This document shows, piece after piece, positions 47,433 through 53,741 of a stretch of DNA of 64,000 bases (the first letter of the stretch is position 1; every line of letters begins with the position of its first letter). Location: the sequence record MN871449.1. The stretch is one strand, 5' to 3'. The translations under genes were made by a program, and so were the position numbers. The notes under the pieces are model-generated. The model made no database searches. It was not told where the DNA came from and saw only the letters and a program-made list of their open reading frames with translations.

Positions 47433-47591
47433 ATGAAAGAAAGTATACTTTTATTAATTGTCACTCTCATTGCATTGCTTTGTTTCGGCGTATCGTTACC
47501 GTTGGCCATCCTTTACGGGTTCGTCTCTGTGCTCGTCTGGTATATTGTTTCGCCGTTCGCTCTGTTAGTCTCCGTTACCTATTTATCCTAA
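47433..47591 (+). CDS. 52-aa hydrophobic membrane microprotein (not in ORF track)
   Basis: GAGG RBS; MKESILLLIVTLIALLCFGVSLPLAILYGFVSVLVWYIVSPFALLVSVTYLS. Confidence 0.7.
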   Translation: MKESILLLIVTLIALLCFGVSLPLAILYGFVSVLVWYIVSPFALLVSVTYLS

Positions 47592-47606
47592 GAGGGAGAA
47601 ATCATC

Positions 47607-47777
47607 ATGTCTTACTTCATCACGTTAATTCTCACTCTGCTGATCTGCACCTTCTTTGAACTGACTATCATCCCAGCAGTTCTGGTAGCGTTCGCCGCGG
47701 GAGTTATTGGAGCGCTTTCAGAAGAGCAGTTTAACAAAGCCAATTTCAACGCAACCCATTCACCGGAGGCGTTGTAA
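47607..47777 (+). CDS. 56-aa membrane microprotein (not in ORF track)
   Basis: GAGGGAG RBS; MSYFITLILTLLICTFFELTIIPAVLVAFAAGVIGALSEEQF... Confidence 0.75.
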   Translation: MSYFITLILTLLICTFFELTIIPAVLVAFAAGVIGALSEEQFNKANFNATHSPEAL

Positions 47778-47896
47778 TGAAAACGTCTTTCGTGGTACTG
47801 GGGATTATTTCCTCGGTACTTATTCTTGACCTGGCTTTACTTCCGGCCTGCGTTTTCGCCGTCGCCGTAGGGAGTTACTTAAAAGCGGTCAAATAG
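47777..47896 (+). CDS. 39-aa membrane microprotein (not in ORF track)
   Basis: GGAGG RBS, TAATG coupling; MKTSFVVLGIISSVLILDLALLPACVFAVAVGSYLKAVK. Confidence 0.7.
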   Translation: MKTSFVVLGIISSVLILDLALLPACVFAVAVGSYLKAVK

Positions 47897-47976
47897 TAGT
47901 AAGCGCTGCCTCTCAACAGCGTGAGTAGTGCACTCTCACCCGTAGTTAAATTATTCAATTCAAAAGGTAAATTATC

Positions 47977-48264
47977 ATGGAAAAAATCAAAGCGTTCTTC
48001 TCTTTCTCTTTCACTGAGAAAACCAAAGCAATCTTTGCTTTCATCACCGACACCCTGATCGTTGCCGCGCTGGCAATCTTCGCCGCGTTCTGCATGGCTA
48101 CTGCCATGGAAGTGGCAGCCTACGCTTTTGCGGTCTTGGTTATCTTCAGCTATATTCACGATAGCTACAACAACCTCAAAACCGTCATTTCTCCTGCCAC
48201 TGACGGCGAGACTGCGACTGACGCAGGCGAGACCGACGTCTCTGACGCAGCGGTAACCGCTTAA
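47977..48264 (+). CDS. membrane protein (2 TM, acidic tail)
   Basis: AAGGT RBS; hydrophobic core. Confidence 0.75.
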   Translation: MEKIKAFFSFSFTEKTKAIFAFITDTLIVAALAIFAAFCMATAMEVAAYAFAVLVIFSYIHDSYNNLKTVISPATDGETATDAGETDVSDAAVTA

Positions 48265-48344
48265 GTCGTCACTTCACCCTTGGCACACGAGATAAGAAGG
48301 AAACGCCTTACGATAAGCTAAATTAAATTCTCACACTCTCAAAC

Positions 48345-48548
48345 CGTTATAAGACGATATTTCTCGTTACCCACCCGACACCTGTAATCGAGGCTGTGGC
48401 GTTGTACCTACTGACTCTTCCGAAATCGAGGAAAGATCAGAGTTCAGGGACAATAGCAGTAAACCCTCTTACTGGTTCGGTAGTTGCAGAACAAATGACA
48501 GGCTTCGCCGTCTGGTTCTGGACATCGCCGTATGCGACTCTTATAACG
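48345..48548 (+). ncRNA. candidate structured RNA element
   Basis: 10-bp closing stem CGTTATAAGA/TCTTATAACG enclosing several hairpins in a 330-nt gap. Confidence 0.35.
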
Positions 48549-48598
48549 CAAACAACTCTCTCACGTCTAAGTCTACTCTTAAAGTAAAAGGAAAAATT

Positions 48599-48883
48599 AT
48601 GTTAACTTCCATCATCATTATTGCATTAACCTTCGCTATAAGTTTTGTTCTTTGGACGGCCATTGGAATGAACAAATTGGCCATCAAGAATGCAAAAACC
48701 GAAGAAGAAAAAGGTAAGAGTAATAAAGGTACTAAAGTACTTTATGCTGTCATTTCAGCCATTTTCATCCTCTCTATTATTGGGGCAGTTATTTTCAACA
48801 TCGAACTGTTGACTTTAACTATCCTTACCGGAATCATCGGTTTGATGTTTTACGGTAGTTTGAATTCATCAAAAAATAATTAA
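48599..48883 (+). CDS. membrane protein (3 TM)
   Basis: AAGGA RBS; hydrophobic segments. Confidence 0.75.
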   Translation: MLTSIIIIALTFAISFVLWTAIGMNKLAIKNAKTEEEKGKSNKGTKVLYAVISAIFILSIIGAVIFNIELLTLTILTGIIGLMFYGSLNSSKNN

Positions 48884-50229: not shown

Positions 50230-50700
50230 ATGAAAAAATTCATTGCTGCTTCACTCATCGCCCTGTCCTCTATCGCGTCCTTCAATGCCATGGCCACCGT
50301 CAATAATTGGACCGAATCTTATCAGCAGGGTACTCTGGAATTCTACACCGAAAACAGCGACGGTTTCTCACTCGCATTCTCTTGCCGCGATACTGGCGAC
50401 CAATGGCCGGTTCAAGCGCTGTTTCTGAACGGTACTAACGGCAACTCGCTTTCCAGCGATGATGATCGCTACGCGCTGGTTATCGAAATGGCCGGTCAGA
50501 AGTACCAGATGATCTCTCCTGCTTCTACCGTTGGGGCAAGTAACTGGCGCTTGTTCTTCGAAGGCGTTAAGAAAACCAAAGCAAAAACCGTTAAGGTTTA
50601 CGTACAAGATCATCCGGAGACCTTCGTTGTTTTCTCAACCAACGGGCTCAAGAAAATCGTCGCCGAAAATAAAGGCGGTAACTGCTTCTTTCTCGGCTAA
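50230..50700 (+). CDS. exported protein (signal peptide)
   Basis: MKKFIAASLIALSSIASFNAMA|T; two Cys. Confidence 0.75.
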   Translation: MKKFIAASLIALSSIASFNAMATVNNWTESYQQGTLEFYTENSDGFSLAFSCRDTGDQWPVQALFLNGTNGNSLSSDDDRYALVIEMAGQKYQMISPASTVGASNWRLFFEGVKKTKAKTVKVYVQDHPETFVVFSTNGLKKIVAENKGGNCFFLG

Positions 50701-50813
50701 ACAAGTGGGTGGAGAGGGTAAACCCTCTCCGCTCCTAGATCTTTTTCTTTTTTAAGTTTATTCTGTCTTTCTTTGAGGCAAGCCGCCTAGAATAAAGAAA
50801 GGATAGCGTTACC

Positions 50814-50981
50814 ATGTCACAGACCACCCCTGAAAAGAAAGACGAAAGTCTGGATTTTGATTCATTCACTCTGAGCGAAGAAGAGGCGGAATCAGCGTTA
50901 GCAAAAGCCGAAGCGTTTATCGAAGAACAACCTGAAATCGAAGCCAGCGATGACTGCGAAGGCGGGGCATGTAAAATTTAA
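50814..50981 (+). CDS. 55-aa acidic peptide ending DDCEGGACKI, mimic of the NrdA C-terminal redox tail (not in ORF track)
   Basis: AAAGGA RBS; own terminator 50985-51013; E. coli NrdA ends DDGCESGACKI. Confidence 0.75.
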   Translation: MSQTTPEKKDESLDFDSFTLSEEEAESALAKAEAFIEEQPEIEASDDCEGGACKI

Positions 50982-50984
50982 TTC

Positions 50985-51013
50985 TAAGGGCGTTTTCGCC
51001 CTTATTTGTTTTG
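50985..51013 (+). terminator. intrinsic terminator
   Basis: TAAGGGCG-TTTT-CGCCCTTA + TTTGTTTT. Confidence 0.75.
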
Positions 51014-51433
51014 TTTCATGAAAGGGTATTCAACGTGTTTAAACCGGCTAATGTTAGTAAACTAGTTAATATTTATCTCCCCTTACCGAACTACCTGCGC
51101 GCTGCCGATATCGAACGGTTATCAAGGGCGTTTAAAACCAGACAAGTTCTTGAGGGTGAACTTAATCCTCAATTAACTAAACTCGCTTGGGAAAATACTA
51201 ACGAATTCTTCGCACGTTTTAGAAAGATCGTGACGCCTTCTCACTTCATCGGTAATTTCAGACTGACCGATAAAGGGATCAAAGCCGATATCGCCATTAC
51301 GGATAAAACTTTGATCGAATACGAAGGAGTGATAACCCTTAAACGCCGCACCTTCAATGACTATTGGAAGTTGGGTGACAGTTACAAAGACGCCCCAGGA
51401 TTCTTTGGGGTAGACATTTTCACACGGAGCTAA
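51011..51433 (+). CDS. hypothetical protein
   Basis: 140-aa ORF; start uncertain. Confidence 0.55.
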   Translation: MFHERVFNVFKPANVSKLVNIYLPLPNYLRAADIERLSRAFKTRQVLEGELNPQLTKLAWENTNEFFARFRKIVTPSHFIGNFRLTDKGIKADIAITDKTLIEYEGVITLKRRTFNDYWKLGDSYKDAPGFFGVDIFTRS

Positions 51434-51435
51434 TC

Positions 51436-51669
51436 ATGGAAACTGAATGGGACCACATTCTTCTCACGTTACAACTGGCGTACAGCGAGCACAAAACTCA
51501 AACGGCTATCAAAACAGCCGCCCGGTTAATGGCGACTAAAGTCAAAGAAATTGACTGTTATAACTGGCTGATGAAAGTGACACTCTCGCCGGCGCCATTG
51601 AAAGTTTTAGTCCGCGAACTCAAGGAGCGTCGCCCTGATGACTTACGATATTATCCGGGGGTCGCGTAG
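51436..51669 (+). CDS. hypothetical protein, paralog of 52480..52731
   Basis: L.TL.LA..EH motif. Confidence 0.65.
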   Translation: METEWDHILLTLQLAYSEHKTQTAIKTAARLMATKVKEIDCYNWLMKVTLSPAPLKVLVRELKERRPDDLRYYPGVA

Positions 51670-52778: not shown

Positions 52779-53741
52779 ATGAATAATGAAATAATCGTTT
52801 ATTACCACGACCTTTGCATGGACGGTTTCGCGGCGGCGGCAATCATGTATCAATATACAAGGCTGCAGACTTTCATCCCGGTAAACTACCGTGCTATGCC
52901 GGACTTAGAAAATGAGGAGCCGGTACATATTGTTTTTGTCGATTTCACTCCACCGTTTGAATGGGTTGAGAAGAACGCGGCACGTATACGGTCTATCGTG
53001 ATCCTCGATCATCATGCAGACAAAAAAGAAGAATGTGATAAGATCCAAAAATTCTTCGGGGCGACGGTTGTTTATTTCGACACAGAACTTTCAGGGGCGG
53101 GTTTAGCATGGAAATATGTTAATTCTACCCCTATGCCAGAAGTGATTCGTTTAATCAATAACCGCGACCTCTGGATTGCAGAAGAGAGCGAACGGAATTA
53201 CCACGAACTCTTTGTTCAGTATTTGAAGAAGGGGGATAAGGATGAAATTTTCCCACCTTTCATTGAGTTGTTTAAATACAGCAAAGAACAAGTTGAAGAA
53301 ATTCTCCGCCCGCAGGCCGAACTGTTAGTAAAAGGTCGGGATAAAAATATTGCGTTTCACCTGAATAAAGCAGTCATTATTGAAGAGGCGGCAGAAAGTC
53401 CTTTCTCAGTGGCGTATATTTCTGCTCCGTATTATTACGCTTCTGAAGCGGCCAGTACAATCATGGCCCAAGACGACAAAGTTAATCTGGTCGTGAACGT
53501 AACGTTAAACCGGAACGGTCTCGGTTTGTCGTTCCGGTCACGCAAAGGGACAGGTTTGGCACAACAAGCCGCGGTGCGATTTAACGGTGGAGGGCACGCT
53601 GAGGCTGCTGGCGGGGTCTTTGACCATCCTGTCCCTTTTACCGTGCTTCATGAGATGATTTTCCGCACTGATCCCCATGAGGCGTATCTTAACTTTTTAC
53701 TCGATCAATACAGTGAACTGGGTACCAATAACAAAGGGTAA
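52779..53741 (+). CDS. DHH/DHHA1 family phosphoesterase
   Basis: YHDLCMDGFAAA, VFVDF, ILDHH, SGAGL, RDLW, SFRS, GGGHAEAAG. Confidence 0.88.
   Translation: MNNEIIVYYHDLCMDGFAAAAIMYQYTRLQTFIPVNYRAMPDLENEEPVHIVFVDFTPPFEWVEKNAARIRSIVILDHHADKKEECDKIQKFFGATVVYFDTELSGAGLAWKYVNSTPMPEVIRLINNRDLWIAEESERNYHELFVQYLKKGDKDEIFPPFIELFKYSKEQVEEILRPQAELLVKGRDKNIAFHLNKAVIIEEAAESPFSVAYISAPYYYASEAASTIMAQDDKVNLVVNVTLNRNGLGLSFRSRKGTGLAQQAAVRFNGGGHAEAAGGVFDHPVPFTVLHEMIFRTDPHEAYLNFLLDQYSELGTNNKG

Follow-up and report, generated by a model that had tools for sequence, protein, structure and literature searches.

A small gene of jumbo phages appears to encode a free-standing copy of the redox-active tail of ribonucleotide reductase NrdA

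We analysed a 64,000-nucleotide stretch of sequence record MN871449.1 (the window), which is DNA of Serratia phage KpXa_1, and in it a small gene for an acidic protein of 55 residues (Table 1). Our comparisons support the view that this gene encodes, by itself, a copy of the flexible dithiol tail at the C-terminus of NrdA, the alpha subunit of class Ia ribonucleotide reductase (RNR). Judged from sequence, the mimicry of NrdA is exact and surprising; the mechanism that we attach to it is a proposal. Because a phage that lacks RNR keeps a conserved gene ending in the redox tail of this enzyme, the phage probably acts on the recharging step of the DNA-precursor enzyme of its host. An earlier note on this DNA had described a stand-alone gene for an NrdA-type tail, and identity with NrdA ends, invariance of the cysteine pair throughout the family and purifying selection all argue that this description was right.

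The open reading frame (ORF) lies where the earlier note had placed it and translates exactly as quoted there. The NrdA that we compared, from E. coli M9682-C1 (L007:1249-3534), closes with an acidic run, then two cysteines spaced by four residues (CX4C), then two further residues, which bears out what the earlier note says of the E. coli enzyme. When we compared the peptide with this NrdA by BLASTP, the extreme C-termini were identical at 11 of 16 positions (pairwise E = 9e-5), and the alignment was confined to the C-terminal 16 residues. Nine of the last ten residues agree with the E. coli end, and both the CX4C spacing and its distance to the C-terminus are alike. A blastn search of complete E. 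coli genomes with the 3' end of the ORF returned only two matches, both to the last 30 bases of nrdA. We also aligned a profile of the phage family described below with a profile of eleven NrdA C-termini. In this hhalign comparison the probability was 96.7% and E was 4.5e-10 over 14 columns, a profile-profile match to NrdA that is far above chance expectation.

The last ten residues, back-translated and followed by a stop codon, were then used to scan one genome from each of 185,579 bacterial and archaeal species. This exact 10-residue end was matched in 58 species, and 54 of the 58 matches are the 3' ends of full-length nrdA genes. The owners of these genes include many species of Yersinia and Serratia, together with Morganella, Sodalis, Edaphovirga, Pseudoalteromonas, Psychrosphaera, Oleispira, Glaciecola and others. 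The other four matches are small ORFs that stand alone, on contigs that are short or were binned from metagenomes (L025, L035, L041 and L053), in assemblies labelled Terrabacter, Neisseria, Flavobacterium and Moraxella. These four are probably phage DNA that was binned with bacteria, and they suggest that the family extends past phages of Enterobacterales.

Two cysteines in an acidic peptide could bind a metal, or could form a redox sensor that is independent of RNR, with a motif that is convergent or merely inherited. The PHROGs label of 'unknown function' would suit such an unrelated role. We consider it improbable, since all ten terminal residues are those of real NrdA ends, including the non-cysteine positions and the exact distance to the C-terminus. 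The NrdA-like terminal residues are also the most conserved part of the family, which makes convergence very unlikely. Retention of exactly the NrdA-specific residues therefore implies the same binding partners.

Pfam returned nothing meaningful for the 55-residue product. It matched no RNR family and hence does not belong with the catalytic ten-stranded barrel or the ATP-cone (Ribonuc_red_lgC/lgN), and it had no match to the CP12 or Sml1-type families at E up to 1. What the peptide does possess is the mark of a class Ia alpha tail, a C-terminal CX4C that stands two residues from the end after an acidic run. Nor is it a redoxin of the thioredoxin fold, for it has CX4C instead of CxxC, no Pfam match and a model with one helix. 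When the PDB was searched by sequence, the peptide and a profile of five members drew chance matches only and no RNR or redoxin entry; the HMMER filters stop a match of 14 residues.

AlphaFold2, run on the family alignment, predicts a single helix at residues 22-38, with a predicted local distance difference test (pLDDT) score of 80-87. Both ends are predicted to be disordered, and residues 1-21 have low to moderate pLDDT. One family member, P0040, aligns with residues 719-761 of E. coli NrdA at 17 of 43 identical positions (E = 6e-7), a segment that comprises the last helix of the enzyme body and the whole flexible tail. An Arg-Asp-Gly step before the linker is kept in many members, at the position where NrdA has it. 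Since the last 43 residues of NrdA can be aligned with some members, the gene probably arose by capture of the 3' end of nrdA (last helix plus tail) and then became an independent small gene. We also considered whether the N-terminal acidic-hydrophobic motif copies the C-terminal peptide by which NrdB binds NrdA. This idea found no support and was set aside, as BLASTP against E. coli NrdB was empty and the corresponding part of P0040 aligns with the last helix of NrdA.

The peptide is one of a family that counts at least 45 small phage proteins of 43-64 residues. By tblastn against 50,697 phage records, we found the gene in 40-42 records, all of them jumbo phages. The carriers are Siatvirus, Maaswegvirus (FBKp24), Centimanus, Miamivirus, about 20 Erwinia phages (Snuvirus and related genera), Yersinia phage phiR1-37, one Raoultella phage and one phage whose recorded host is Stenotrophomonas. 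When 5.8 billion proteins were searched by profile, there were 44 clusters (43-64 residues, E 1e-23 to 7e-3), and an exhaustive profile search of 1.84 billion representatives (50% clustering) yielded 42 at E up to 0.001. IMG/VR held only nine loci, mostly in phages already found. The family corresponds to phrog_10239, phrog_14561 and phrog_37884 of PHROGs, all listed as 'unknown function'. Against PHROGs the window protein scored weakly (E 0.015-0.048), and relatives in which the module is fused to a larger protein matched phrog_10239 at E 6.6e-9. Full-text searches of the literature turned up no account of a class I RNR tail that stands alone, nor of any phage protein that acts on host NrdA.

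We counted conserved columns in an alignment of 45 sequences, starting at the C-terminus. Both cysteines are present in 45 of 45 members, so that the reading passes a check that the earlier note had named, and Gly51 and Lys54 are equally invariant. Gly50 is kept in 42 members, Ile55 in 41, Asp46 and Glu49 in 40 and Glu43 in 38. Every one of the 45 proteins ends two residues past the second cysteine, and 43 have exactly two cysteines. The mean acidic fraction across the family is 0.28, and the part before the tail varies in both length and sequence. When comparing KpXa_1 to FBKp24, the ratio of replacement to synonymous substitution rates (dN/dS) is about 0.08, with synonymous changes only in 17 of the 55 codons and replacements in 12. 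The last 17 codons show four synonymous changes and no replacement. Distant members encode the same tail residues with both serine codon families and with various cysteine, glycine and alanine codons. These codon comparisons show that selection is on the protein and not on the DNA.

These data bear on the possibility that the ORF is what remains of an nrdA 3' end and has no function, or is simply not expressed. The ORF is small, and its homologue g117 in phiR1-37 drew almost no reads, both of which would fit a remnant. However, the family occurs in unrelated lineages, namely the phiKZ-like Siatvirus, Maaswegvirus and Miamivirus, Snuvirus, phiR1-37, a T7-like phage and a phage of about 105 kb. 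Each copy has its own start codon and Shine-Dalgarno (SD) sequence. The low dN/dS and the synonymous turnover within an unchanged tail also speak against decay, and we regard a remnant as very improbable.

Over this region, identity is 100% with Serratia phage KpXa_1 (MN871449.1, 304 kb; host field Klebsiella pneumoniae) and 98-99% with nine relatives, among them Klebsiella phage KpLz-2_45 of the genus Siatvirus. The KpLz-2_45 genome has genes for the PhuZ tubulin and for several split RNA polymerase beta subunits, and this phage is therefore a phiKZ-like jumbo phage. KpXa_1 is itself a phiKZ-like jumbo phage of Siatvirus. Six of the ten closest records bear the name 'Serratia phage', yet their host field reads Klebsiella pneumoniae. 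The last ten residues of the peptide are the end of Serratia and Yersinia NrdA and have no match in any Klebsiella species representative. The earlier note had called the gene unannotated. This holds for MN871449.1, which carries no annotation at all, but not for KpLz-2_45, FBKp24, Centimanus, LPKP23 and MJ359, in which the equivalent ORF is listed as 'hypothetical protein'.

That the window has no nrdA, as had been noted before, is right, and it extends to the whole of KpLz-2_45. In this complete genome, no RNR gene is annotated among all the features, neither annotation nor tblastn with E. coli NrdA, NrdB and YfaE (E up to 10) revealed nrdA or nrdB, and the only tblastn match was the tail itself. 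Annotation and tblastn at the same E limit likewise gave no nrdA or nrdB in the complete genome of Erwinia phage pEa_SNUABM_7, an unrelated jumbo phage. A weak tblastn match in that genome (L087:6630-6770, to NrdA 715-761, 25% over 47 residues, E 3.6) is probably due to chance. Divergent class II or class III RNRs in these two genomes were judged by annotation only. The published gene table of phiR1-37 lists no phage RNR, its sole ribonucleotide reductase entry being a host gene. No class I RNR was found within 10 kb of the gene in about 15 other contexts.

If the peptide were the detached tail of a split phage-encoded NrdA, as the earlier note had offered for consideration, the rest of the enzyme should be encoded by the phage. 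Class II NrdJa+b is a precedent for such a split, and one carrier contig has genes for class III NrdD and NrdG nearby. Class III enzymes, however, do not have such a tail (PMC5704485). A split RNR would also have, in its own genome, a cognate catalytic gene that lacks the module, and there was none in KpLz-2_45, pEa_SNUABM_7 or phiR1-37. With nrdA and nrdB absent from two complete carrier genomes, unlisted in a third and not seen within 10 kb elsewhere, we give a split NrdA next to no chance. For this phage, it is refuted by the genomes of KpLz-2_45 and pEa_SNUABM_7, with phiR1-37 listing none.

The carriers do encode enzymes that act on nucleotides. KpLz-2_45 has thymidylate synthase, dihydrofolate reductase, dUTPase, thymidylate and thymidine kinases, phosphoribosyl pyrophosphate (PRPP) synthetase and salvage enzymes for nicotinamide adenine dinucleotide (NAD). 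Its 'thymidylate synthetase' (NC_061418.1 23994-25373; L008) has 459 residues, much longer than the usual ThyA, and an extra domain or a fusion is possible. In a T7-like phage contig, a family member lies between the primase-helicase and DNA polymerase genes, directly upstream of the latter. In the phage contig of about 105 kb, the member stands just after a family-A DNA polymerase gene, and NrdD, NrdG, ThyX and RtcB are also encoded. Another member directly follows a gene for a MYG1-type hydrolase, near a nucleoside deoxyribosyltransferase-like gene. Miami and Snuvirus share the order HD-type phosphohydrolase, 165-residue protein, peptide, with a deoxycytidine monophosphate (dCMP) deaminase gene nearby, and in Snuvirus the peptide gene overlaps the 3' end of the preceding gene. 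Family members often lie within nucleotide or replication modules. The gene itself looks like a mobile accessory in virulent phages that rely on the RNR of their host. In a separate case, the member P0029 occurs on contigs of 60-325 kb (L014-L016) on which genes without a Pfam match adjoin an RND efflux pump operon; these contigs may belong to a phage of very large size, to a prophage or to a bacterial island.

In class I RNR, the C-terminal cysteine pair reduces the active-site disulfide at each turnover and is then re-reduced by thioredoxin or glutaredoxin (PMC4078304, PMC5704485). We propose, along the lines of the trans-acting shuttle in the earlier note and with somewhat less than even confidence, that the free tail works in trans in the relay from host thioredoxin or glutaredoxin to NrdA and so supports the supply of deoxynucleoside triphosphates (dNTPs). 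Because exactly the residues of the tail are retained, the same two partners should recognise the peptide. Host thioredoxin and glutaredoxin, which recognise the NrdA tail, would keep the peptide as a dithiol in the reducing cytoplasm. The peptide would enter the active site of host NrdA in trans and reduce the turnover disulfide there. Diffusible 'spare tails' would in this way be added to the regeneration step, and the net effect would be to keep up the dNTP supply of a phage that needs host RNR to replicate its 300-kb genome. Docking or solubility would be served by the helix and the acidic N-terminal part, and the gene would be expressed on its own short transcript. A dithiol peptide would turn over only when something oxidises it, and, to our knowledge, the only specific oxidant for the tail sequence is the NrdA active-site disulfide. 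Since the peptide would also be reduced in the cytoplasm, it is more naturally an electron carrier than a trap.

The mimicry would fit equally well with a decoy, a third explanation raised in the earlier note. A free tail could compete for the NrdA active site, or for thioredoxin and glutaredoxin, and slow host RNR. The outcome would be shut-off of host replication, starvation of co-infecting phages or reshaped dNTP pools. There is a precedent in yeast Sml1, a small disordered protein that reportedly blocks regeneration of the RNR large subunit. PMC4078304 cites Zhang et al. (2007) on Sml1. Furthermore, the DNA of phiR1-37 has deoxyuridine in place of thymidine, so dNTP pools must be rewired, and the T7-like carrier could live largely on breakdown of host DNA. 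Even so, we think that a decoy is unlikely. The carriers that we checked have no RNR of their own and do have enzymes that use RNR products, and a block would starve a phage of 250-300 kb. A reduced dithiol peptide would also be a substrate or product of the relay and not a stable trap, which would make a lasting block hard to explain chemically. We favour a supporting role because the carriers need host RNR, because their own genes consume its products and because the re-reduction step limits steady-state turnover of E. coli RNR. Sustaining the dNTP supply is thus more likely than blocking it.

Several observations weigh against a tail that works in trans in the host relay. No Klebsiella or Erwinia species is among the 58 that have the exact 10-residue end, with one genome taken per species, and in phiR1-37 three of the last ten residues of the peptide are unlike those of Yersinia NrdA. 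The tail thus does not follow the host exactly. In KpLz-2_45 (Siatvirus), annotation and a crude motif scan revealed no thioredoxin or glutaredoxin, which is a weak negative. In RNA-seq data of phiR1-37, the means for g117 are 3.9, 1.5 and 1.2, compared with hundreds to tens of thousands for its neighbours, and only a host-type promoter is predicted upstream of it. Two other ORFs of about 155 nt in the phiR1-37 table are equally low in reads, and the low values for g117 may reflect loss of very short transcripts; as they stand, these data speak slightly against strong expression. Tethering gives the native tail a high local concentration, such that the gain from a free tail is not obvious. Lastly, the 12 fused relatives, whose N-domains have no assigned function, hint at a targeting or adaptor role.

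The fused relatives lead to a further alternative, in which the peptide is an adaptor. Its tail would bind host thioredoxin, glutaredoxin or NrdA, and its N-terminal part, or a fused N-domain, would bind a phage component. Either a host redoxin or RNR would be recruited to phage machinery in this way, or electrons would be fed to another phage protein. Fusion is frequent: in 12 of 42 representatives, the module (about 46 residues) is the C-terminal part of a protein of 84-360 residues encoded on a phage contig (P0045-P0055, P0064-P0068 and P0072; loci L081 and L082). Two recurrent N-domain families, one in P0045/47/50/52 and the other in P0046/49/55/68, have 25-47% identity within each, indicating that the fusions are real. 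The gene adjoins a DNA polymerase gene in the T7-like contig (upstream) and in the contig of about 105 kb (downstream), and DNA polymerases of the T7 type use host thioredoxin. The overlap with the end of the preceding gene in Snuvirus would also fit an adaptor. However, the N-domains have neither a conserved cysteine pair nor a Pfam or PHROG function, the neighbours of the stand-alone genes are unrelated to them, and no partner gene recurs consistently across contexts. We regard an adaptor as improbable. We also asked whether the upstream genes of Miami and Snuvirus are split counterparts of the fused N-domains, and discarded this, as BLAST found no similarity.

The gene and the signals around it are collected in Table 1. 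The SD-like sequence and the two flanking hairpins that had been described earlier were all found, and each hairpin is followed by a T-run.

Table 1. Positions of the peptide gene, its parts and its flanking signals in the window
Feature	Position	Strand	Remarks
Coding sequence, 55-residue acidic protein	50814-50981	+	ATG start; TAA stop, included in the coordinates
SD-like AAAGGA	50798-50803	+	10 nt upstream of the ATG
Upstream hairpin with T-run	50704-50755	+	Perfect 9-nt arms at 50711-50719 and 50722-50730
Intergenic stretch	50756-50797	+	Conserved between KpXa_1 and FBKp24/Centimanus
Terminator-like hairpin with T-rich run	50985-51014	+	Directly 3' of the stop codon
Residues 1-21	50814-50876	+	Acidic N-terminal part, alternating acidic and hydrophobic; predicted disordered
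Residues 22-38	50877-50927	+	Sole predicted alpha-helix; counterpart in P0040 aligns with the last NrdA helix
Residues 39-55	50928-50978	+	Flexible tail; Cys48 at 50955-50957, Cys53 at 50970-50972

The extended stem of the upstream hairpin (about 50704-50736) has a folding energy of -24.3 kcal/mol (z -4.1), with the T-run after the stem. In FBKp24 and Centimanus, this stem is retained despite changes on both arms, which appear in the alignment as paired substitutions. The upstream hairpin probably terminates the preceding gene and so separates the peptide gene as its own unit. On the other side, the hairpin at 50985-51004 (-13 kcal/mol, z -5.5) was scored as terminator-like, and FBKp24 has a different hairpin with a T-run at the same position. 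Because two strong hairpins bracket the ORF, the peptide gene looks like a separate unit between two terminators. At the SD position, the FBKp24 alignment shows an equivalent AAGGA. The conserved intergenic stretch may be a phage promoter. We found no sigma-70-like promoter upstream of the peptide gene, and the conserved upstream motif is present in the window as a single copy.

Several neighbours of the gene are worth recording. The gene just upstream (50230-50700, + strand) encodes a 156-residue protein with a signal-peptide-like N-terminus, which matches phrog_3429 (unknown function; E 4e-25) and whose first 25 residues are faintly like 'spackle periplasmic'. It is probably an exported phage protein. 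Downstream on the same strand are a DUF7740 protein (51436-51669, E 1e-6) and a DHH/DHHA1 phosphoesterase (52779-53741; phrog_4771, E 1e-55). The trio of peptide, DUF7740 and DHH genes is also found in FBKp24, Centimanus and a metagenomic contig (L019). Further upstream, a run of small ORFs at 47433-48883 (+ strand) encodes almost wholly hydrophobic products of 39-95 residues, much like a cluster of tiny membrane proteins.

RNR is the bottleneck in making DNA precursors, and many phages bring their own. How large phages that lack RNR source their dNTPs is not well explained, and this gene points at the regeneration step as a place to intervene. We suggest, again with somewhat less than even confidence, that virulent phages without RNR control the host enzyme through a separate, diffusible redox tail that mimics its regeneration arm. 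If true, re-reduction of class Ia RNR would be driven or gated intermolecularly in vivo, and infection would have a point of control there. Together with its fused relatives, the peptide would represent a new class of auxiliary metabolic factor that has spread horizontally among unrelated phage lineages. Such factors would place a free-standing enzyme tail in viruses beside the CP12/GAPDH case and provide RNR enzymology with a natural trans-acting tail. The gene also gives a concrete hypothesis for PHROGs that are listed without a known function, in jumbo phages of Klebsiella, Erwinia, Yersinia and their relatives. A review describes the DRT9 defence as triggered by phage NrdAB activity (PMC13434031). 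It is speculation that use of the host enzyme, instead of an RNR of their own, lets these phages evade sensing of the DRT9 type.

Among known systems, the peptide is most directly comparable to the class Ia NrdA tail itself (about residues 737-761 in E. coli). The two share the CX4C, the acidic stretch that leads into it, the two residues that follow it and a predicted flexibility. The peptide differs in having no catalytic domain, in being a separate 55-residue product of a phage that lacks RNR and in a diverged pre-tail part. The closest known case of an RNR C-terminal relay module with its own gene is class II NrdJa+b of Pseudomonas aeruginosa, in which the electron-relay domain NrdJb is encoded separately (PMC5704485). 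Unlike the phage peptide, NrdJb is a Cys-rich zinc-finger domain of 150-220 residues that has no sequence similarity to class I tails (PMC5704485). NrdJb is also encoded beside its cognate catalytic subunit, whereas the cognate enzyme of the phage peptide is that of the host.

Phage thioredoxins and glutaredoxins, such as T4 NrdC and NrdH-like proteins, represent a similar viral investment in the thiol relay that regenerates RNR. They differ in having the thioredoxin fold with CxxC and in usually being paired with a phage RNR; the peptide has neither that fold nor that motif. Sml1, Spd1 and Hug1 are small disordered regulators of the eukaryotic RNR large subunit. Like the peptide, they are small disordered proteins placed at the interplay of tail and active site in that subunit. 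They are, however, cellular inhibitors with no sequence relation to the peptide, and they do not copy the tail. The closest viral analogy is CP12, a small disordered protein with a cysteine pair; it is related by homology to the C-terminal extension of GAPDH-B, and cyanophages carry it. CP12 acts on another enzyme and pathway, has no sequence relation to the peptide and is an inhibitory scaffold. Nevertheless, it too is a free-standing, phage-borne homologue of the redox-regulated tail of an enzyme, and with it host metabolism is turned towards nucleotide synthesis.

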